Positions 1-18,978 of a DNA stretch of 18,978 nucleotides are shown in pieces. A model generated the notes under the pieces. It saw only the letters and a program-made list of their open reading frames with translations, had not been told where the DNA came from and did not search any database. This DNA is from Azolla caroliniana. Lineage: Eukaryota; Plantae; Polypodiophyta. The number at the start of each line of letters is the position of its first letter. Position 1 is the first letter of the stretch. Position numbers and translations under genes: made by a program. The DNA is taken from NCBI GenBank assembly GCA_043228905.1, contig JBHGNT010000621.1, positions 1 through 18,978 of the forward strand, given 5' to 3'.

Positions 1-620
1 CTCGCACAGCACTACTAACACATGATTACACAAATTGGATTGAGAAATGAAGAATTTCTCGTAAGTCTAGACACGCAGTATTAAGGGGAGTTTTATTAAC
101 ATTGTTAGCGAACGCCGGGCGATAATTATATTTGGTTCGGTAACTAAAATATTACTGTTATCCCATCGGTAAAAACCTGTACTACTTATTGATTTTTTTT
201 TGTATTGTATAAGTTAAATAAATTCTCCACAAATATTAGAACATGCATTCCATTCATTTAGCGACCAGTCCCTTTTTGATTGATTTATTATATCTAAATC
301 TGCAAAATCAAAACTCGTAACGACATCTATCGGTAGTCCAAGGTAGTTCAAAAGGTAAGCAGGGAATAAATTGCTGGATAAACGGGAATGGTGTCCCATG
401 ACGGATAATGGAAAGAGGGCGGGTGAATATGTTATTCAACATTTTTAAATATATTTTATTGAAAAGCATTAAAGGAAATTTAATAGTTTTAAATATTTCA
501 GGGTATTACTTTTTTTAATTAGTTTCATAAGCTTATATGTAAACGCTTAAGTATTTCAAAGTACTGTATTATTATAAAATTCCAAGTAGAAAGCTTAGTG
601 ATGTTAAGATCTATATCTGA

Positions 621-808
621 TTTCACCCCAACGACATCTTTCGACCTGCTTGGAACTATGTCAGTTCTCATCAGGCAAACTAGTCGAAGGATGAATATCT
701 CTGAAAAATTCTCATACTTAACCAATCTTTTTTGGCACTAAGCCATCAAAATAAGACCGACACGCCATCTACTATTAGAGGTAGAAATCACAGGGCGAGA
801 CCGGTATC
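621..808 (-). mobile_element. Copy of hammerhead-bearing dispersed repeat (Penelope-like/retrozyme-like), ribozyme degenerate
   Basis: Minus strand of 631-688 reads TTCGACTAGTTTGC-CTGATGA-GAACTGACATAGTTC-CAAG-CAGGTC-GAAAG; GAAA is mutated to CAAG. The plus strand then continues with the family blocks CATACTTAACCAA...GGCA and CGCCATCTAC...GGTAGAAATCA, also seen at 15.5 kb and 16.5-17.3 kb. Confidence 0.8.
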
Positions 809-2899: not shown

Positions 2900-4113
2900 T
2901 ACTTAAAAATGCATAACTTTTTGTTGGGCCCCATTAGAATGTTAACATTGTGGAGATTCAAAGAAAACAAACGCGTCTACAATATACTATAAGTTGGTTT
3001 GCCTATCGTGACTGGAAATATTTTTTTTGAGCATTTAAAGTCAACCTTTTATATCTTTATCTATATAAAACAGACATGTTGTCACTTAAAAAGTCATAAC
3101 TATTTGTTGAGCCCCAATAGAATGTTAATATTGTGGTGATTCAAAGAAAACAGATGCGTCTACAACATACTATAAGTTGGTTTGCCTATCGTGACTGGAA
3201 ATATTTTTTTTGAGCATTTAAAGTCAACCTTTTTTAACTTTATTTATATAAAAAAAATACGTTGTCACTTAAAAATTCATAATTTTTTGTTGAGCCCCAA
3301 TAGAATATTAATATTGTGGTGATTCAAAGAAAACGGATGCGTCTACAACATACTATAAGTTGGTGTGCCTATCGTGACTGGAAATATTTTTTTTGAGCAT
3401 TTAAAGTGAACCTTTTATATCTTTATCTATATAAAACAAACATGTTGTCACTTAAAAATTTATATCTTTTTGTTCAGCCCCAATAGGATGTTAATATTGT
3501 GGTGATTCAAAGAAAACGGATGCGTCTACAACATACTATAAGTTGGTTTGCCTATCGTGACTGGAAATATTTTTTTTGAGCATTTAAAGTCAACCTTTTG
3601 TATCTTTATTTATATAAAAAAAACATGTAGTCACTTAAAAATTCACAACTTTTTTTTGAGCTCCCATAGAATGTTAATATTGTAATGACTCAAAGAAAAC
3701 AGATGCGTCTACAATATACTATAAGTTGGTTTGCCTATCGTGACTGGAAATATTTTTTTTGAGCATTTAAAGTCAACCTTTCATAACAAAAAAAACATGT
3801 TGTCACTTAAAAATTCATAATTTTTTGTTGAGCCCCAATAGAATGTTAATATTGTGGTGATTCAAAGAAAACAGATGCGTCTACAATATACTATAAGTTG
3901 GTTTGCCCATTGTGACTGGAAATATATTTTTTGAGCATTTAAAGTAAAGCTTTTATATCTTTATTTATATAAAAAAACATGTTGTCACTTAAAAAGTCAT
4001 AACTATTTGTTTAGCCCCAATAGAATGTTAATACTGTGATGATTCAAAGAAAACAGATGCGTCTGCAACATACTATAAGTTGGTTTGCCTATCGTGACTG
4101 GAAATATTTTTTT
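2900..4113. repeat. Satellite A: tandem array of about 7 copies of a ~183-bp monomer
   Basis: Anchor GCGTCT recurs at 2973, 3156, 3339, 3522, 3705, 3877 and 4059 (spacings 183,183,183,183,172,182). Confidence 0.97.
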
Positions 4114-4899
4114 TACCTTTGACAAGCTATCTCTGGTACATAGCACAATAATTAAATTAAAAATTGTATTTAATTAAACTAAATGTTGATCGAAATTGAG
4201 TCAAATAAGCATTTTTTTTTTGTTTTATAAACCGAAATTTCGTAAATGCATCAAACGGCTTATATCCAGTGTTTTGCAATAATGCGGAGGATTAGGCTGA
4301 TAAATTTATTGTTGGATTTGTAGGAGCAATTTAACGTTCGGATAAATCCCTGTTTCCAACACTCGCGGCTAAACAATTTAAACCTGGATATTAGAGTAAA
4401 CAATATCGTTTTTCTTTCTGCTAATAAAAAATACGTCGGTGCATTTTTTAATGTAAATAAAATCAATCTAATGATTAGTCGAAACATAACAAATCTAAAA
4501 CAACGAAAATATTTAATTATTACAGATGCTTTAATCTAATTAAAATTACACATTATGATATTAAATATTTATTGAATGATATTCGACGAATTCAAATAAT
4601 TTTGGCGATGAAACAAATTAAAATTGTTTAATTAATAAAGGTTTTTTTGAGTTTTGAATTTAATATAGGTTAAATAAATAAAACAATGCGTAATTTTAAA
4701 TTTTGATATGTGACGAAATAGTTTCATTTTAATTTAATGGGAGTATATGTAATATCATCATTTCAAATCCTTTCCTTCGGAAATCCCTTAAATCCAGTAA
4801 ATGTATCTCATATTTGTGAATATTCGTCAACTAACTTTAAATTTCGTACAAAAATAACATAAGTAATATGTTGCTCTGTTACTTTTTATGTATATTTTA

Positions 4900-5284: not shown

Positions 5285-7924
5285 GCGCCATCTAGCGGTA
5301 GAGACAAAAAACCTAACTGAAATAATTCAAAACAGGTCATAAAATGTCGGTTGATGAAATACATTTGGCTTATATTTGACAAAAATTCATTTTAATATAC
5401 TTCTAATGGTAATATGTTCAATTTTTTACTGTTTAATTTAAAATATTTTCGTTAAAAAAATCACTTTTACACTTCCGAAGAACCTACAACTTGACCGAAA
5501 GTTAAAGTAAAAAACAGGATACAAATGTCTTTTTTTACATAGTTTAAAATACAAACTGATGGTATATTGTGGTAAACACGAGATTTTAAAGATTTCCAAA
5601 AGAAGAAGTCCAGTACTCTTAGATCTGGGAATCTGGATGGCCAGTTGATACACATACTCGTTTTAAAATCACGGAGATTTTTACAACATAATGAGACCCA
5701 TGCGTCCTGATATAGTTCAAAACCGGTCATAAAATGTCGGTTGATGAAATAAATTTGACCTATATTTAACAAAAATTAATTTTCCATTTTCCAATTTCTA
5801 TTTCCAAAAGAAGAAGTCCTGTACTCTTAGATCTGGGAATCTGGATGGCCAGTTGATACACATACTCGTTTTAAAATCACGGATATTTTTACAACATAAT
5901 GAGACCCATGCGTCCTGATATAGTTCAAAACCGGTCATAAAATGTCGGTTGATGAAATAAATTTGGCCTATATTTGACAAAAATTCATATTCCATTTTCC
6001 AATTTCCATTTCCAAAAGAAGAAGTCCCGTACTCTTAGATCTGGGAATCTGGATGGCCAGTTGATACACATACTCGTTTTAAAATCACGGAGATTTTTAC
6101 AACATAATGAGACCCATGCGTCCTGATATAGTTCAAAACCGGTCATAAAATGTCGGTTGATGAAATAAATTTGACCTATATTTAACAAAAATTAATTTTC
6201 CACTTTCCAATTTCTATTTCCAAAAGAAGAAGTCCTGTACTCTTAGATCTGGGAATCTGGATGGCCAGTTGATACACATACTCGTTTTAAAATCACGGAG
6301 ATTTTTACAACATAATGAGACCCATGCGTCCTGATATAGTTCAAAACCGGTCATAAAATGTCGGTTGATGAAATAAATTTGGCCTATATTTGACAAAAAT
6401 TCATATTCCATTTTCCAATTTCCATTTCCAAAAGAAGAAGTCCCGTACTCTTAGATCTGGGAGTCTGGATGGCCAGTTGATGCAAATACTCGTTTTAAAA
6501 TCACGGAGATTTTTGCAACATAATGAGACCCATGCGTCCTGATATAGTTTAAAACCGGTCATAAAATGTCGGTTGATGAAATAAATTTGGCCTATATTTG
6601 ACAAAAAATTAATTTTCCATTTTCCAATTTCTATTTCCAAAAGAAGAAGTCCAGTACTCTTGGATCTGGGAGTCAGGTTTTTGTATATTGTGGTAAACAC
6701 AAGGTTTTAAAGATTTCCAAAAGAAGAAGTCCAGTACTCTTAGATCTGGGAGTCTGGATGGCCAGTTGATGCAAATACTCGGCTTAAAATCACGGAGATT
6801 TTTACAACATAATGAGACCCATGCGCCCTCTACCGGTAGCGGCAAAAAACCTAACTGATATAGTTCAAAACCGGTCATAAAATGTCGGTTGATAAAATAA
6901 ATTTGGCCTATATTTGACAAAAATTCATTTTAATATACTTCTAATGGTAATATGTCCAATTTTTTATTGTTTAATTTAAAATATTTTCGTTGAAAAAATC
7001 ACTTTTACACTTCCAAAGAACCTACAACTTGACCGAAAGTTAAAGTAAAAAACAGGATACAATTGTCTTTAATTACATAGTTTAAAACACAAACTGATGA
7101 TATGTTGTGATAATCACGAGATTTTAAAGATTTCCAAAAGAAGAAGTCCAGTACTCTTAGATCTGGGAGTCTAGATGGCCAGTTGATGCAAATACTCGTT
7201 TTAAAATCACGGAGATTTTTGCAACATAACGAGACCCATGCGTCCTGATATAGTTCAAAACAGGTCATAAAATGTCGGTTGATGAAATAAATTTGACCTA
7301 TATTTGACAAAAATTAATTTTCCAATTTCCATTTCCAAAAGAAGTCCCGTACTCTTAGATCTGGGAATCTGGATGGCCAGTTGATGGAAATACTTGTTTT
7401 AAAATCATGGACATTTTTGCAATACAATGAGACCCATGCGCCCTCTACTGGTAGCGACAGAAAACCTAACTGATATAGTTCAAAACCGGCCATAAAATGT
7501 CGTTTGAAGAAATGAATTTGGCCTATATTTGACAAAAATTAATTTTAATACACTTTTTATGATGATGTGCCCAATTATTTACTGGTTGATTTAAAGTATA
7601 GACAAATTTATATTACAGTTAAAATTAAAATAAAAAAAAATAGGATACAATTGTCTTTTTTTACATTGTTTAAAACACAAACTGATGGTATGTTGTGTTA
7701 AACAGGAGATTTTAAAAAAGTCACGTTTTGTTAGATCTGGCAATCTGAAGGACCAGTTTAAATATTCACATATGTTTTTGTATCAAAATTTTAATACTTT
7801 TTCGAGCTGTGTGTAATTAACAAATATCGACAAAACAACTCTTTTGTTAGCATAATTAGACGGCAGGCGTCACCTATGGGTAACGGTAGAAAACCGTTCT
7901 GTTATAGTTCGAGACCGGCCACAA
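5285..7924. repeat. Composite tandem array with a 208-bp core unit: transposase fragment (-) fused to hammerhead 3' half (+)
   Basis: Anchor GAGACCCATG at 5693, 5901, 6109, 6317, 6525, 6814, 7231 and 7429, with more diverged units at both ends. Each unit encodes INWPSR[F/L]PDLRVxDFFFW on the minus strand and contains CTGATATAGTTCAAAACCGGTCATAAAATGTCGGTTGATGAAAT on the plus strand. Confidence 0.95.
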
Positions 7925-8758: not shown

Positions 8759-9362
8759 TTACAGACGTGCCTCGACGAAAATGTGTTGCAATCATTGGGA
8801 ATGTTGTGCTCTATAATTAAGCGGAATCATATATTGGAAATGTTTCATCCAACGACATCGTTTCGAACTATATCAGTTCTCATCAGGCAAGCTAGTTGAA
8901 TAACGAATATTTACTTTAATTCTCATAACTTAAATAATATTTGATAGCATTAAGCAATACATCTAAACGAACGCGACATCTTCCGGTAGCGATAGAAAAT
9001 CGTAACGCTAACAAGGTTCAACTGAAAAGTCTCACAGATATGCTTCGATAAAAATGTGTTGTAAACAGTTTGTATATTTGGCTCCATTTTTGAGCAAAGA
9101 GATTCAAATAACTAAAGTTTGGTTAAGTAAATTTATATTTTAGAGACTACAACCATTAAAACTGTTCTCTTTAGACAACAAAAGTTATTAAAATACTGTT
9201 GAACAAAACAAATAAAGAACTCACAGACGTGCCTCGACGAACATGTGTTGCAAACAATAGGAATGTTGGGCTCCATACTTGAGTGGGAACATTAATATTC
9301 GAGTTTGGTAAACCAAACATATAATTGAAATGTTTCATCCAACAACATCTTACGACCGGTTT
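8759..9362 (-). mobile_element. Two partial copies of the hammerhead-bearing repeat with a triplicated flanking block
   Basis: 8851-8900 (-): CTTGC-CTGATGA-GAACTGATATAGTTC-GAAAC, with the cleavage-site segment deleted. 9331-9362 (-): AAACCGGTCGTAAGATGTTGTTGGATGAAACA, the 3' half only. Block ACAGACGTGCCTCGACGAA.ATGTGTTGCAA recurs near 8760, 9033 (diverged) and 9223. Confidence 0.8.
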
Positions 9363-10125: not shown

Positions 10126-11397
10126 TAATAATAAAAGCGGAGAGGGGTGCAAAAGCACCTACAGAACCTGGGCATGAGCCCTTTGTTCCCTCTTAGGCAT
10201 TGCCGCGATAGTCATTCCCCATTTACTGGTACCGTGAGAAGAGTTCGCAGAAACCTATCCCTCAGCACCAGAGGTCGTGTATCGCACCGTTACTACGTAA
10301 ACAGCGATTGTCATTCCCCCATTGCTGGCTCTAACGAAGGAAGCTCGAGGAGCTTCCTCGTGATCCAGGGTGCTCGACACATCGCACCGTCACATGAAGG
10401 ATATGGCATCAACAGGAGAGTCCACTCCCCTCGAAATTGACTGTGAGTCAACCAGGGTCCATGGTGTCTCCTGTTTCTGTATGCTGGTAGCCGTTCAGAA
10501 GATTCCCGCCTCAGCAGGTATAATGTCCCTGCACAGACGGAGAATCCTTTTTGGTGTAAGGTTCCTTATTGTTTTAATCTCCTGCGGAAGATCCCCAAAT
10601 GCGGCAGCCCTCCCGGCCGAGAGAGCTCTGCACTCGCATAGCACGTGCATCGCCTCCTCGGCCTCTGTTTTACACCACCTGCATAAAGGTGACTCGACCA
10701 AATGAAGATTGAACATGTGTTTGTTGAGCGGTGCGTGGCCGGTAACCACCTGAACCAGGGCTCTGGCCTCGCAGCGCTTCAACTTTTTGAAATCTGTTTT
10801 CCATTCCGGGTGGAGGAGGGAGCCCAGGGCAGCCTTGGCTTGTCTGCCTGCACTCTCCCACCTCCGTCTGTGTTGTCCTTCGACCCAGTCTGCCAGAGAT
10901 TTCTTAACGATTTCTCGGGATGGACCGGGAGCGAAGCCCTGATATCGCTGACCTGCCCTAGAACCTAGCCTGGCCAGTCGGTCTGCCGCTACGTTCCCAC
11001 TTATGCCTATGTGTCCCGGAACCCAGTTCAGGTGTAGCTGGCAGAGCCCACCCAGTCTGTTTAGTGTCCGGGCACACTGAAGCACTACCTGCGAGTTAAT
11101 ACACACCCTGGATAGGGCCTGTAGGGCCGCATTACTGTCCGTACAAATGTGCACTAATCTGCCTCTTGTGTTGCCCTCGGCTAGTCTGTTCAGAATTATC
11201 TATGACCGCTAAGCGATAGGAACCTGTTAAAACCGCCTCTCCTGTTATATATTCCCATACCCACAGAGTTGCCACTTTTGGCTCCATCAGTGTACCAGAT
11301 GTCCCCGTTGCGCGGAAGGAGCTGGTCACCACTAATGGTCCACTCGGCTTTGCTGCTGAGGCTGACCCGGTACTTCTTATCGAAGACTGGGCATTGT
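10126..11397 (-). mobile_element. 5'-truncated non-LTR retrotransposon with RNase H and C-terminal CCHC zinc knuckle (LOA/Lian-like; clade tentative)
   Basis: GC-rich island flanked by a 7-bp TSD, GCACTAA, at 10119-10125 and 11398-11404. Short (TTA)n-type 3' tail on the minus strand near 10126-10136, ~370-bp 3' UTR, and coding remnants as listed in the next feature. Confidence 0.92.
10495..11390 (-). pseudogene. LINE ORF2 C-terminus (RNase H + zinc knuckle), frameshifted
   Basis: WYTDGAKSGNSVGMGIY in one frame. ICTDSNAALQAL...LNWVPGHIGISGNVAADRLA (RNase H) and CRWCKTEAEEAMHVLCEC (CCHC) in another. The usual ..QAE.. helix between them is missing at a frameshift near 11200. Confidence 0.9.
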
Positions 11398-12589: not shown

Positions 12590-14955
12590 GATTCAAATTT
12601 CATTATTTCACTTCGGAGCTATAAAAAAATATTTTTAATTTAACTGGCTTATTTATATTTTAATATGTTAAAGAAGCAACACTTTTTTAGAGATTGACGC
12701 AAACTAGACATATTTATCTGCCTTCAAAATAAAGTTATGAATTTTTTTTCGAGATCGTGGTTGGTCTTAGAATATTCAAACATAATTATGTCACTTTGGA
12801 GATCTAAAAAAAATATTTTTGATTAAAGTGGGTGATTATATTTTGATATGTTAAAGATGCAACATTTTTCCATAAATTGACGCAAACTAGACATTTTTAT
12901 CTGCCTTCAAAATAAAGTTATGAATTTTTGTTTGAGATCGAGTTTAGTCTTAGAATTTTCAAATATAATTATGTCACTTTGGAAATCTAAAAAAAATAGT
13001 TTTGATTAAAGTGGGTGATTTATATTTTGATATGTTGAAGATGCAACATTTTTCTATAGATTGACGCAAACTAAACATTTTTATCTGCCTTCAAAATAAA
13101 GTTGTGAATTTTTGTTTCAGATCGTGTTTAGTCTTAGAATTTTCAAATATAATTATGTCACTTTTGAGATCTAAAAAAAATATTTTTGATTAAAGTGGGT
13201 GATTTATATTTTAATATGTTAAAGATACAACATTTTACTATAGATTGACTCAAACCAGACACTTTTATCTGCCTTCAAAATAAAGTTATAAATTTTTGTT
13301 CGAGATCGTGTTTAGTCTTAGAATTTTCAAATATAATTATGTCACTTTGGAGATCTAAAAAAAATATTTTTGATTAAAGTGGGTGATTTATATTTTGATT
13401 TGTTAAAGATGCAACATTTTTCTATAGATTGACGCAAACTAGACATTTTTATCTGCCTTCAAAATAAAGTTGTGAATTTTTGTTTGAGATCGTGTTTAGT
13501 CTTAGAATTTTCAAATATAATTATGTCACTTTTGAGATCTAAAAAAAATATTTTTGATTAAAGTGGGTGATTTATATTTTGATTTGTTAAAGATGCAACA
13601 TTTTTCTATAGATTGACGCAAACTAGACATTTTTATCTGCCTTCAAAATAAAGTTGTGAATTTTTGTTTGAGATCGTGTTTAGTCTTAGAATTTTCAAAT
13701 ATAATTATGTCACTTTGGAGATCTAAAAAAAATATTTTTGATTAAAGTGGGTGATTTATATTTTGATATGTTGAAGATGCAACATTTTTCTATAGATTGA
13801 CGCAAACTAAACATTTTTATCTGCCTTCAAAATAAAGTTGTGAATTTTTGTTTCAGATCGTGTTTAGTCTTAGAATTTTCAAATATAATTATGTCACTTT
13901 GGAGATCTAAAAAAAATATTTTTGATTAAAGTGGGTGATTTATATTTTAATATGATAAAGATACAACATTTTACTATAGATTGACTCAAACCAGACACTT
14001 TTATCTGCCTTCAAAATAAAGTTATAAATTTTTGTTTGAGATCGTGTTTAGTCTTAGAATTTTCAAATATAATTATGTCACTTTGGAGATCTAAAAAAAA
14101 TATTTTTGATTAAAGTGGGTGATTTATATTTTAATATGATAAAGATACAACATTTTTCTATAGATTGACGCAAACTAAACATTTTTATCTGCCTTCAAAA
14201 TAAAGTTGTGAATTTTTGTTTCAGATCGTGTTTAGTCTTAGAATTTTCAAATATAATTATGTCACTTTGGAGATCTAAAAAAAATATTTTTGATTAAAGT
14301 GGGTGATTTATATTTTAATATGATAAAGATACAACATTTTACTATAGATTGACTCAAACCAGACACTTTTATCTGCCTTCAAAATAAAGTTATAAATTTT
14401 TGTTTGAGATCGTGTTTAGTCTTAGAATTTTCAAATATAATTATGTCACTTTGGAGATCTAAAAAAAATATTTTTGATTAAAGTGGGTGATTTATATTTT
14501 AATATGTTAAAGATGCAACATTTTTCTATAGATTGATGCAAACTAGACATTTGTATCTGCCTTCAAAATAAAGTTGTGAATTTTTGTTTGAGATCGTGTT
14601 TAGTCTTAGAATATTCAAATATATTTATGTCACTTTGATGATCTAAAAAAAATATTTTTGATTAAGGTGGGTGATTTATATTTTAATATGTTAAAGATGC
14701 AACATTTTTCTATAGATTGACGCAAACTAGACATTTTTATCCGTCTTCAAAATAAAGTAATGAATTTTTGTTTGAGATCGTGTTAAGCCTAAGAAATTTC
14801 AAATATTATGTCACTTTAGAGCTCTTAAAAAAATACTTTTGATTAAAGTGTGACATTTATATCTTAATACGTTGCATACATGCATTATTTTATAACAGAT
14901 TTACGCAAATTAAACATTTCTAGTATATTTAAAATGGAGTTATGAATTGTTGTTT
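12590..14955. repeat. Satellite B: tandem array of about 13 copies of a 184-bp monomer
   Basis: Anchor GTCACTTT at 12790, 12973, 13157, 13341, 13525, 13709, 13893, 14077, 14261, 14445, 14629 and 14810. The centre is homogeneous and the edges are diverged. Confidence 0.98.
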
Positions 14956-15593: not shown

Positions 15594-16399
15594 TGGACGG
15601 AAGGTGTCACTACAAGTAACTTTGTAATTTTGTTATCAGACCAAGTGGGCCAATTTTTCAATATATTTCCTAATTTTAAATTATTCGTTTATCCCTTATT
15701 AAAATTAATTTTAGCTACGCTAACGTAACGTCGAGAAGATTATTTCAAAAACTGCGAATATACCTACCGAGGGTTTAAGTGGAAACAACTCGTTAAAATA
15801 ATGACTGTATTCAAGTTTCCCATTAAAGTCAAATATGAGCTTTGTTTTTCTTACAACGATTTTCGATATAACGGTAAGAAAATTCGAAGACCAAATGAGA
15901 AAAAGTAATTTGTTTTAAATTTAAAATTCATTGATGATTTAATTTTAATCTTGTGAGAGAACTAGAAAAGGGAACGTTTTTTTTTCATTCAAGTTCCACG
16001 GATAAAAAAATTGTAGAACTACGTTATCCATGTATTCATTGACTCTATAAACGAGGAACTTGGTTGTAATGATATTAATAAAAAATCATACTTGTTCCCT
16101 CTCTTGCTTAAAGTAATAAAACAAATATTCAGCAACCAATTATTGTTTTTAGATGTGACGCAAAGAATAGTGTTATAATATAAGTTTGCTTAGGCTCTGG
16201 TAAAATCGTTTAAAGAAAATATGAAACACAAAAAAGATACTTTTTTGTATAGAGGTGGGAGAAATCATGCGTAATAATTTCTAATTGGTCAACACGAATT
16301 GTTGTTGACCAATTAGTTATTTTCAACAGTTATTTAGAAAATATATTCCGACAAAATTACCACATATCCTAGTTAACCAATATAAATGTAAAAAAAATC

Positions 16400-17418
16400 C
16401 AGTCTGGTTGAAAACCAAACACATATTTAAAAAATTTCATCCCAATGACATCTTACGACCAGTTTCGAACTATGTCAGTTCTCATCGGACAAGCAAGTCT
16501 AACAATAAATATTTCTCTAAAACTCCCACACTTAACCAAATTTTGTTGGCATCGAGCTGTTAAATATTGATCCGACGCGCCATCTACCATTAACGGTAGA
16601 AATCAAAGCGAGACTTTGGAACTGTCCTCGATGATACTGGTAGATGGCGCGACTTTACTGGAATGACAAAATACATATCATTTATACGAATGAATTGATT
16701 TTAAGAATATATTTGCTTTATTAACAATAATGACCTAATTCTAAAGAGTAAAAATTAATTTTTAGAAATTCTTTTACTTTTCTGGTTTCGAACTATGTCA
16801 GTTCTTATCAAGTAAGCTAGTCCAACAATAAATATTTCTCTAAAATTCCCACACTTAACCAAAATTTGTTGGCATCGGGCTGTTAAATATTGGTCTGAAG
16901 CGCCATCTACCATTAACGGTAGAAATCAAAGCGAGACTTTGGAACTGTCCTCGATGATACCGGTAGTTAGCGCGACTTTACTGGAATGACAAAATACATA
17001 TCATTTCTACGAATGAATTAATTTTAAGCATGTATTTGCTTTATTAACAATAATGACCTAATTCTCAAGAGTAAAAATTAATTTTTAGAAATTCTTTTAC
17101 TTTTCTGGTTTCGAACTATGTGAGTTCTCATCGGGCAAGCTAGTCAAAGAATAAATATTTCTCTAAGCTTCCCATACTTAACCAATATTTGTTGGCATCG
17201 AGCTGTTAAAATATCTGACGCGCCATCTACCATTAACGGTAGAAATCAAAGCGATACTTTGGAACTGTACTCGATTATACCGGTAGATGGCTCGTCGGAC
17301 TAATTTTGATGCTATATGTATGTCTCTACTGGAACGTCAAAATACATATCATTTCTACGAATTAATTGTTTTTAAGAATATATTTGCTTTATTAACAATA
17401 ATGAACTAATTTTAAAAG
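16400..17418 (-). repeat. About 3 tandem copies (323-bp period) of the hammerhead-family repeat
   Basis: GTTTCGAACTATG starts at 16462, 16785 and 17108. Each unit has an HHR remnant, a CGCCATCTACC...GGTAGATGGCG fold-back and an AT-rich spacer. Confidence 0.93.
16445..16499 (-). ncRNA. Type I hammerhead ribozyme, variant core (U4C), cleavage site retained
   Basis: Minus strand: CTTGT-CCGATGA-GAACT GACAT AGTTC-GAA-ACTGGT-C-GTAAG. Confidence 0.7.
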
Positions 17419-17496
17419 GTTAGCAGCTCTAAGCCATATACTAATTAAACATTTTGACAGACACACAATTGACAACTATTATAGACAGTTAAAGTT

Positions 17497-17660
17497 TTTA
17501 ACAGTTTGATACCAACAAATATTGGTTAAAATGGGAACCTTTGAGAGACATTGATCGTTCGGCTAACTTGCCTGATGAGATCTGACATAGTTCGAAACCG
17601 GTCGTAATATGTCGTTGGGATGAAATGTTTCAAAAATACGTTTGTTTTTTAAACAAATTG
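17497..17660 (+). mobile_element. Copy of the hammerhead-family repeat, inverted relative to the 323-bp tandem
   Basis: Reverse complement of the 16405-16565 segment (CCAACAAATATTGGTTAA..TGGGA...CTTGCCTGATGAG...GTCGTTGGGATGAAAT). Confidence 0.88.
17560..17614 (+). ncRNA. Minimal type I hammerhead ribozyme with complete canonical core
   Basis: Helix I TTGC (17568-71)/GTAA (17604-07), plus distal CGGC/GTCG. Core CTGATGA at 17572-78. Helix II GATCT/AGTTC (one U-U mismatch) with loop GACAT. GAA at 17594-96, palindromic helix III ACCGGT at 17597-602, and GUC cleavage triplet ending at C17603. Confidence 0.88.
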
Positions 17661-18162
17661 TATATTTTTAATTAAAGACAGTCCTACCAACGTGGGAAAA
17701 ATGTACCTATCTTTCTAGGAACTTTTAAATGACAATTTCACCTTAATTATTATCACAGCAATATATCGAATCGTATACACTCTACCACCTAATAAAATTT
17801 TAACATTTAGTTATCTACGTAAGGAAAATATATGCGAGAAACATTTGGACAATTTCCCTATCTCCAACAGAGTTGTAATATATGTGTGCTGGATTAGTAT
17901 AAAGTACCGCTGACCAAGGCTATAAACCGAGAATTATTTCTACATTATATTATCTAAACTCTCCATATGCGCTCGTAAAACTACTTTCGCATACTTACAA
18001 CCCTTTACGTCTTGTTAAGCGTTTTCAAAAATTTTCATTTGATTTTAAAAAATCTAAATAAAATGGATTAATAGTTATTTTTTGCTACCATTGTATTGTT
18101 ATTTGGGTATTTTTTTTTAACTTTGTGAGACTAAAATCAAAAAGAAATTATACTTTGATTTT

Positions 18163-18183: not shown

Positions 18184-18551
18184 TTAAAATATTGTTATTT
18201 TAAACCTTCATACCACAAAATTTTGCAAATTTTTCCACTTTGATTTGTTAATTTTAGTGTTTTAGTAGCAACAAAAAAATTAAATTTTAATACCCCTCAA
18301 TTTAAATTAAAATTAGACACACTATGTAATTTATATTTCACTTCTATAATCTCGTTACAAAGATAACTTTTAGAAAATATTACGCCACTGTTTTAAGATA
18401 AAATGCTAAATGGATATTACTGCAAGTACGTGGTTATGGACTTTATTATTCCCGGCGGAGTTTTGTATGTACGCAAATTAAAAGATAACTCGGATGTCTA
18501 GAAAGATATTTTTAATGGCGACCAAAATTAAAATAATAATTTTTGTGTTTT

Positions 18552-18817
18552 AAACAGAAAAGTAATAGAATTTCCAATAATAATTTTTTACATTTTGGAA
18601 TTAGTTCATTATTGTTAATTTAGCAAATATATTCTTAAAATCAATTCATTCGTAAAAATGATAGATATGTTGTCATCCCAGTACAGTCGCGCCATCTACC
18701 GGTATCATCGAGTACAGTTCCAAAGTCTCGCTTTGATTTATACCGCTAATGGTAGATGGCGCTTCAGACCAATATTTAAGAGCTCGATGCCAACAAATAT
18801 TGGTTAAGTATGGGAAG
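18552..18817 (+). mobile_element. Inverted copy of the 323-bp unit, cut off before its ribozyme by an RTE insertion
   Basis: Reverse complement of about 16525-16788. Similarity stops after TTGGTTAAGTATGGGAAG. Confidence 0.88.
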
Positions 18818-18978
18818 AACAACATGTAACAAACAAGGAAATCTTAAGAAGGATGAAAAAAGAAACAGAAATACTCAACACAATAAAGGAAAGGAAAATA
18901 AGCTATTTTGGTCATATATTAAGAGGTGACAAGTATGAGTTGATGCGATTGATAGTACAAGGGAAGGTGAAAGGAAAG
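18818..18978 (+). mobile_element. 5'-truncated RTE-clade non-LTR retrotransposon fragment (continues past the window)
   Basis: Open frame QHVTNKEILRRMKKETEILNTIKERKISYFGHILRGDKYELMRLIVQGKVKGK fits the post-RT motif of RTE elements (..VTNxEVLRR...RKLxYFGHIxR...LxxIxQGKxxGKR). Not called in the ORF track. Confidence 0.88.

Follow-up and report, generated by a model that had tools for sequence, protein, structure and literature searches.

On the minus strand of an 18,978-nucleotide (nt) stretch of Azolla caroliniana DNA (contig JBHGNT010000621.1, hereafter the window), the enzyme half of one damaged hammerhead ribozyme and the substrate half of its damaged neighbour together spell out a split hammerhead. 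The sequence is real, its architecture is a known one and, as far as the letters allow a judgement, it is most likely a product of decay. The locus closes a small and decaying tandem array on its downstream side, and the array belongs to a very abundant non-coding retroelement family. The complementarity of the two halves, which lie in units 1 and 2 of that array, is best read as complementarity by descent and not as a chance match, and no sign is seen that the hybrid ribozyme of the array is used or selected.

Every letter, coordinate and base pair of the split hammerhead proposed in an earlier sequence-only reading was reproduced on the minus strand, with each piece lying where that reading had placed it. 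Unit 2 (16785-17107) supplies the enzyme half. Its helix I 5' strand, GGACUAGCUUAC (16812-16823), contains CUUAC at 16816-16812, in which a G to A change at 16813 is private to unit 2. The core UUGAUAA (16805-16811) follows, with U3 (16811), U4 (16810) and A8 (16806) each private to unit 2, and then helix II, GAACU-GACAU-AGUUC (16790-16804), which is identical to the family consensus. The last piece (16782-16789) consists of GAA (16789-87) and the ACCAG arm (16786-82). Family homology stops at 16784, and the AG of ACCAG (16783-82) is the beginning of the next repeat unit, which bears out the earlier caveat that this arm derives in part from the duplication junction. Unit 1 (16462-16784) supplies the substrate half, made up of the helix III 3' arm CUGGU (16462-58) and C17 (16457), which together span 16457-16462 and carry a U at 16461 where the family has C, and of the helix I 3' strand GUAAGAUGUC (16447-16456), which contains GUAAG (16456-52). 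The predicted cut falls between 16457 and 16456 in unit 1. All 15 proposed pairs are Watson-Crick; helices I and III have five each, as had been proposed, and the arms of helix III are separated by the expected loop of 319 nt. Helix I can be extended by pairing GAC (16822-20) with GUC (16449-47) across a small internal loop.

The hammerhead core rule applied here was C3 U4 G5 A6 N7 G8 A9, with C3 paired to G8. The hybrid 5' core reads U3 U4 G5 A6 U7 A8 A9 and keeps the 3-8 pair as U-A. The remaining elements of the rule, G12 A13 A14, the A15.1-U16.1 pair and a position 17 other than G, are present as GAA at 16789-87, A15.1 at 16786 with U16.1 at 16458, and C17 at 16457. The U3-A8 covariation, which had been called a known and tolerated one, is documented in natural Penelope-type minimal hammerheads, with about 1,300 matches in Schistosoma mansoni (PMC4209133). 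A long helix III hairpin inside unit 2 itself (ACC ... GGUC, near 16730) was also considered and was rejected, because the sequence 3' of that hairpin is unable to pair with helix I.

The family to which these units belong is a non-coding repeat with a minimal type I hammerhead, in which helix III is the loop-less palindrome ACCGGU. A motif scan found six enzyme halves and four substrate halves of the family in the window, and the window copies give the consensus CUGAUGA ... GAAAC CGGUC GUAAG. Copy D (17497-17669, plus strand) is canonical: CUGAUGA to GAAAC occupies 17572-17598 and includes a 5-bp helix II, CGGUC occupies 17599-17603 with the predicted cut after 17603, and GUAAU and a tail of about 70 nt follow. 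Copy B (8860-8950, minus strand) retains a canonical core (CUGAUGA, 8860-8886), and a 9-nt deletion of CGGUCGUAA removes its cleavage site. Copy B' (9310-9362, minus strand) starts at AAACCGGUC and comprises the substrate half and tail only. Copy A (620-801, minus strand) has a canonical CUGAUGA core (638-674), a GAAAC that has decayed to CAAGC, and mutated helices. Copy E (18552-18816, plus strand) is an inverted array-unit body that ends before the ribozyme, at a LINE-like fragment. Copies D and B' have the palindromic 15.2-16.2 stretch intact as ACCGGU, which the DNA runs also show as the majority letter; unit 1 has a broken version (ACUGGU), and units 2 and 3 stop short of completing it.

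Rfam covariance models expect a helix III hairpin in hammerheads. At gathering scores no hammerhead was matched in the window, and at a relaxed threshold none was called for units 1-3; copy D alone matched Hammerhead_HH9 at the relaxed threshold (16.6 bits against a gathering score of 52, E = 2). An exact-pattern scan of metagenome contigs for the family core plus helix II gave no match, so no outside copies are at hand for a covariation test. No open reading frame (ORF) with RT and GIY-YIG was found in the window; coding remnants were confined to LINE-like ones (RNase H, zf-RVT). These remnants lie in a 219-aa ORF (10495-11154, minus strand) within a GC-rich (about 50%) island, and they identify that ORF as a LINE fragment. 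An ORF-like stretch at 18817-18978 (plus strand) resembles, in translation, the C-terminal portion of a non-LTR reverse transcriptase and has no Pfam match. Just upstream of copy E, the sequence at 18530-18552 (plus strand; GUUUUAAAC-AG) bears a loose likeness to that of the array junction (GUUCGAAACCAG), so copy E may derive from an array-type unit rather than be a free-standing source of the unit body. Further tandem arrays occupy 2901-4114, 5592-6671 and 12592-14873, with periods of 183, 208 and 184 nt respectively, and the motif scan found the family hammerhead in none of the three. An AT-rich, sub-threshold Rfam match to SmY at 17999-18075 (minus strand; 20.1 bits against 39, E = 0.31) is probably noise.

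Tandem Repeats Finder reported the array itself at 16462-17288, with a 323-nt period, 2.6 copies and 91% matches. BLAST and MAFFT extended it to three units covering 16462-17427 on the minus strand, and inter-unit identity in the BLAST comparison of the array units was 93.6% and 91.9%. Unit 1 is the last unit of the array. Unit 3 (17108 to about 17427) is a truncated one with 28 nt inserted near 17289-17316. In unit 1 the enzyme half, CCGAUGA to GAAAC, lies at 16462-16488 and has C at position 4 (16487); that of unit 3, likewise CCGAUGA to GAAAC, lies at 17108-17134. Unit 1 is a complete but mutated ribozyme, with C4 and with ACUGGU in place of ACCGGU, in agreement with the U4C core (CCGAUGA) and broken palindrome that had been ascribed to it. 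The region at 16391-16461, which seems an unrelated flank below unit 1, proved to be a homologue of the tails of copies D, B, B' and A; the family tail proper, 3' of the unit 1 cleavage site, spans 16391-16456 (minus strand).

Units 2 and 3 depart from the family sequence after GAAACC and pass directly into the next repeat unit. Motif scan and alignment both agree with the earlier statement that unit 2 ends there and lacks a cleavage site, and the same holds for unit 3, so that the site is retained by unit 1 only. The start of the repeat body, CAGAAAAGUAA..., showed no convincing homology to the family substrate half past GAAACC. Since the junction is identical in units 2 and 3, it was evidently made once and later duplicated; and since the duplicated segment ends within the ribozyme, these two units hold an enzyme half only. 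Three independent rearrangement breakpoints in the window, at 8860, 9362 and 16784/16785 with 17107/17108, lie no more than about 10 nt from GAAAC/CGGUC: the 9-nt deletion in copy B, the start of copy B' and the array junction after GAAACC. Such a cluster could reflect breakage at the palindrome, or reverse transcription starting or stopping near the ribozyme.

The sequencing runs found to match the locus are contig runs of DNA from one sample only, and no RNA run was among them. Contigs of runs X1, X2 and X3 (one sample, share <=0.16) were aligned to 16300-17700 at >=80% likeness; depth is summed contig depth, and letter counts are given for the best-supported differences (16487, 16461 and 16811). 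At this likeness 3,238 X1 contigs matched. Ribozyme and tail reach summed depths in the thousands, which makes the family very high-copy, and the first 140 nt of the unit body (16629-16769) are near single-copy, at a depth of about 2-9. The part of the unit body with a 12-nt inverted repeat (GCGCCAUCUACC ... GGUAGAUGGCGC), found at 16535-16628, 16864-16957 and 17146-17286, is also very high-copy, with a depth of up to about 9,700. With such a part beside near single-copy 16629-16769, the 323-nt unit is a mosaic of at least two repeat modules and low-copy sequence. High-copy contigs on the unit 2 ribozyme break at 16784 and go on with the canonical substrate half. The array junction is spanned by low-depth contigs only and is therefore a local, low-copy feature.

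At 16487, position 4 of unit 1, the plus strand of the window has G (C4 on the RNA) where the family has A in 598 of 632 units of X1 depth; the family letter is thus U4, and C4 is a minority letter. At 16461, position 15.3 of unit 1, the window has A (U on the RNA) where the family has G in 8044 of 8679 units of X1 depth, corresponding to C, and U is a recurrent minority letter of the family at about 7% of X1 depth. At 16811, position 3 of unit 2, the window has A (U3 on the RNA) where the family has G, or C3, in 738 of 748 units of X1 depth. The U3 letter makes up about 1.4% of X1 depth on unit 2, and a far smaller share of the total depth of the family. Its residual depth is about 10 in X1, about 16 in X2 and about 14.5 in X3, and its presence in all three runs indicates a real letter carried by one or a few copies. 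A read error in UUGAUAA, which the sequence-only reading had itself raised against its proposal, is made unlikely for U3 by these contigs, although the runs possibly come from the window's own sample and are then not fully independent. For the motif as a whole an assembly or read error is very unlikely, as it would take four wrong letters within 8 nt that all happen to be transitions.

The fit between the two halves finds its explanation in the anatomy of the family. Minimal type I hammerheads of Penelope-like elements and related repeats are thought to be active as dimers with an extended helix III (PMC4209133; PMC6765202). With a loop-less, palindromic helix III, the topology implies that the 15.x strand of one copy can pair only with the 16.x strand of another, and that the three-way junction would close only if helix I joins the 5' strand of the first copy to the 3' strand of the second. 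Each active site of a normal dimer would then be built from one copy's enzyme half and its partner's substrate half. This topology is consistent with the dimer drawings in PMC4209133 and with the newt and viroid double hammerhead in the part of PMC6155905 that cites it. The split hammerhead of units 2 and 1 is one half-site of the normal dimer of the family; the reciprocal half-site is dead, because the enzyme half of unit 1 has C4 and unit 2 has no substrate half. The earlier description of an asymmetric version of the dimeric minimal hammerhead, with an enzyme half in one unit and a substrate half in the other, therefore had the architecture right.

When the enzyme halves and substrate halves of all window copies were set against each other in a matrix, nearly every combination gave four or five of five pairs in helices I and III. 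With the unit 1 substrate, the unit 3 enzyme gave 5+5 including one wobble and the copy D enzyme 5+5 including two; no combination among the window copies other than unit 2 with unit 1 was Watson-Crick throughout. Set against the consensus substrate, the unit 2 arm makes a central A-C mismatch in helix III. As the pairing is inherited from the helix I and palindromic helix III of the family, it is not independent evidence of function.

Three departures from the consensus had been said to preserve pairing and to look compensatory. Pairing is kept, and the change from C3-G8 to U3-A8 is a true double change, private to unit 2, but compensatory evolution is not supported. The helix I change is one-sided, a G to A in unit 2 that turns the family G.U into A-U with no double change; the helix III A of ACCAG lies at the array junction and is common to units 2 and 3; and the U of unit 1 is a minority letter of the family. 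At the CG centre of the palindrome, transitions on opposite strands of different copies are complementary by construction. CpG decay was tried as a cause of the helix III change and of the U4 reversion and was set aside, the CpG observed/expected ratio of the window being 1.1, with no depletion.

Unit 2 carries 13 private substitutions in 295 compared columns, and four of them fall within 8 nt (positions 2.2, 3, 4 and 8). All four are transitions, giving A2.2, U3, U4 and A8, and U4 is restored from the C4 of the array. The chance of 4 of 13 substitutions clustering in 8 of 295 columns is P of about 0.019; of the features of the split hammerhead, this clustering alone is statistically unusual. 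Each of the four respects or restores the hammerhead rules; with transitions placed at random, four in the 35-nt enzyme half, a rule-abiding core would result in about 1.3% of cases, and one that includes the 3/8 pair in about 0.03%. Given the very many copies of the family and the hundreds of genome windows scanned, one such coincidence is unsurprising.

Alternatively, gene conversion or template switching could have brought in the whole cluster as a single short patch from a rare family member with a functional U3-A8 core, an origin that we consider unlikely. The compensation would then have evolved elsewhere, selected for the propagation of the element, and its presence in the array would be incidental. 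The density of the cluster, four changes in 8 nt against 9 in 287 columns in the remainder of unit 2, would suit a patch, and in other genomes Penelope-type minimal hammerheads include U3-A8 subfamilies (PMC4209133). In X2 and X3 the U3 depth is about 15, against about 0-9 for single-copy sequence, so a few more copies could exist. However, the small share of U3 in X1 means that no sizeable U3-A8 subfamily is visible within 80% likeness, and the motif scan found no donor copy in the window.

In a 411-nt minus-strand transcript the hybrid structure is absent from the minimum-energy fold and costs +5.1 kcal/mol to enforce, with pair probabilities of about 0.002, 0.01 and 0.0002 for helices I, II and III respectively. 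The core of unit 2 is predicted to pair instead with 16721-16727, and the substrate of unit 1 is drawn into a local hairpin with 16470-16477. As two short strands, unit 2 enzyme and unit 1 substrate are predicted to form the three-way junction as the minimum-energy structure, at -16.0 kcal/mol, and the same junction is predicted for unit 3 enzyme with unit 1 substrate. The hammerhead dimer of canonical copy D is likewise not predicted by the energy model, so that folding energies discriminate poorly here and argue only weakly.

It is improbable that unit 2 and unit 1 form a working asymmetric hammerhead maintained by compensatory change, in which read-through transcripts of the array would be cut at 16457/16456, with enzyme-only units perhaps also acting on transcripts of the family in trans. 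Such a ribozyme would agree with the core rules through the known U3-A8 pair, with the 15 Watson-Crick pairs and extended helix I, with the unusual clustering of rule-preserving changes and with the correct fold predicted for the two-strand mini-construct. The Clec2 discontinuous hammerhead, as cited in PMC6155905, tolerates a long insertion separating its two halves. Against it, the pairing is inherited and did not evolve at the locus, unit 3 has the same helix III A at its junction, and only one side of helix I changed. Folding of the 411-nt transcript disfavours the structure, the arm of unit 2 is mismatched to the consensus substrate, and the runs matching the locus are of DNA only. A single cleavage site in the array also means that no unit-length or circular RNA would be released. 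Moreover, kindred ribozymes of the minimal type are slow in vitro even as intact dimers (PMC4209133; PMC6765202). One Penelope-like element inserted in vitro without any need for cleavage, and RNA-seq showed no ends at the site (PMC11167929).

Neutral decay with inherited complementarity is therefore the account that we favour and hold to be probable. The ribozyme of the family is a Penelope-type minimal type I hammerhead with palindromic ACCGGU and no helix III loop. A DNA-level duplication of a 323-nt segment ending inside the ribozyme, after GAAACC, produced the array, and the one substrate half left in it (GGUC, then GUAAG), together with the family tail, is that of unit 1. By the dimer topology, all enzyme halves of the family would be complementary to all substrate halves, and the split hammerhead would be inherited pairing between two damaged neighbours. 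The array ancestor would already have been without U4, as C4 in units 1 and 3 suggests. Unit 2 would later have gained its four clustered transitions, which by chance restored U4 and replaced C3-G8 by U3-A8, and the cluster would represent neutral drift or a single patch event and not selection at the locus. The hybrid may cleave weakly in vitro.

A bolder form of the proposal is that enzyme-only units made by duplication were kept working by compensatory change, through the restored U4 and U3-A8, and act on the array-end substrate or in trans as a natural asymmetric hammerhead. We regard this as very unlikely. If the hybrid did cleave and did recur, nature would offer a hammerhead whose enzyme and substrate parts sit in different units; such complementation between defective repeat copies would bear on how far ribozyme-carrying retroelements tolerate decay. 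Under neutral decay the lesson is mostly a cautionary one. In ribozyme families that act as dimers, complementarity of neighbouring damaged copies is expected by descent and is thus not to be taken as evidence of covariation.

Several known systems resemble the locus in part. Animal non-LTR retrozymes (PMC7229834; Li et al. 2026 preprint 10.64898/2026.07.22.740005) are likewise low-GC tandem repeats of about 300 nt with a type I hammerhead, and have a link to Penelope pLTRs. Each retrozyme unit carries a complete ribozyme and yields monomers and circles, whereas the inner units of the present array are without a cleavage site. The release of unit-length or circular RNA defines a retrozyme (PMC7229834). 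The 323-nt unit fits the size range of about 170-400 nt in that definition, but a complete ribozyme is not found in every unit: the cleavage site is missing from units 2 and 3, and position 4 is C in units 1 and 3.

The discontinuous hammerhead of the Clec2 3' UTR (Martick et al. 2008, as cited in PMC6155905) also has halves that lie hundreds of nt apart in one RNA. In the description that accompanies this citation, the Clec2 ribozyme is of type III, has its insert in helix I, is conserved across mammals and has been shown to cleave; the present one has its insert in helix III and is known from sequence alone. In newt satellite 2 and the avocado sunblotch viroid double hammerhead (Forster et al. 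1988), as presented where PMC6155905 and PMC4209133 cite them, tandem copies in one RNA similarly share an extended helix III, and a copy on its own has poor activity or none. In those accounts both partners are intact and both sites are cut, whereas here one of two possible sites is complete.

A close likeness in anatomy is to the minimal hammerheads of Penelope-like elements (PMC4209133; PMC6765202), which are of type I, without a helix III loop and palindromic at 15.x-16.x. Helix II has 5 bp here and no unpaired base after A9, against 7-8 bp with a bulge in the Penelope-like minimal hammerheads (PMC4209133). Unlike the setting of these hammerheads, the window holds no Penelope RT/GIY-YIG ORF. 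The pair of units 2 and 1 is a heterodimer half-site of two damaged copies, whereas the dimer of Penelope-like minimal hammerheads consists of two intact motifs. Lunse, Weinberg and Breaker (RNA Biol 14:1499, as cited in PMC6765202) reportedly also dealt with minimal hammerheads of Penelope-like elements. With these ribozymes the present family further shares a massive copy number, high sequence variation, a proposed action as dimers and a natural U3-A8 pair.
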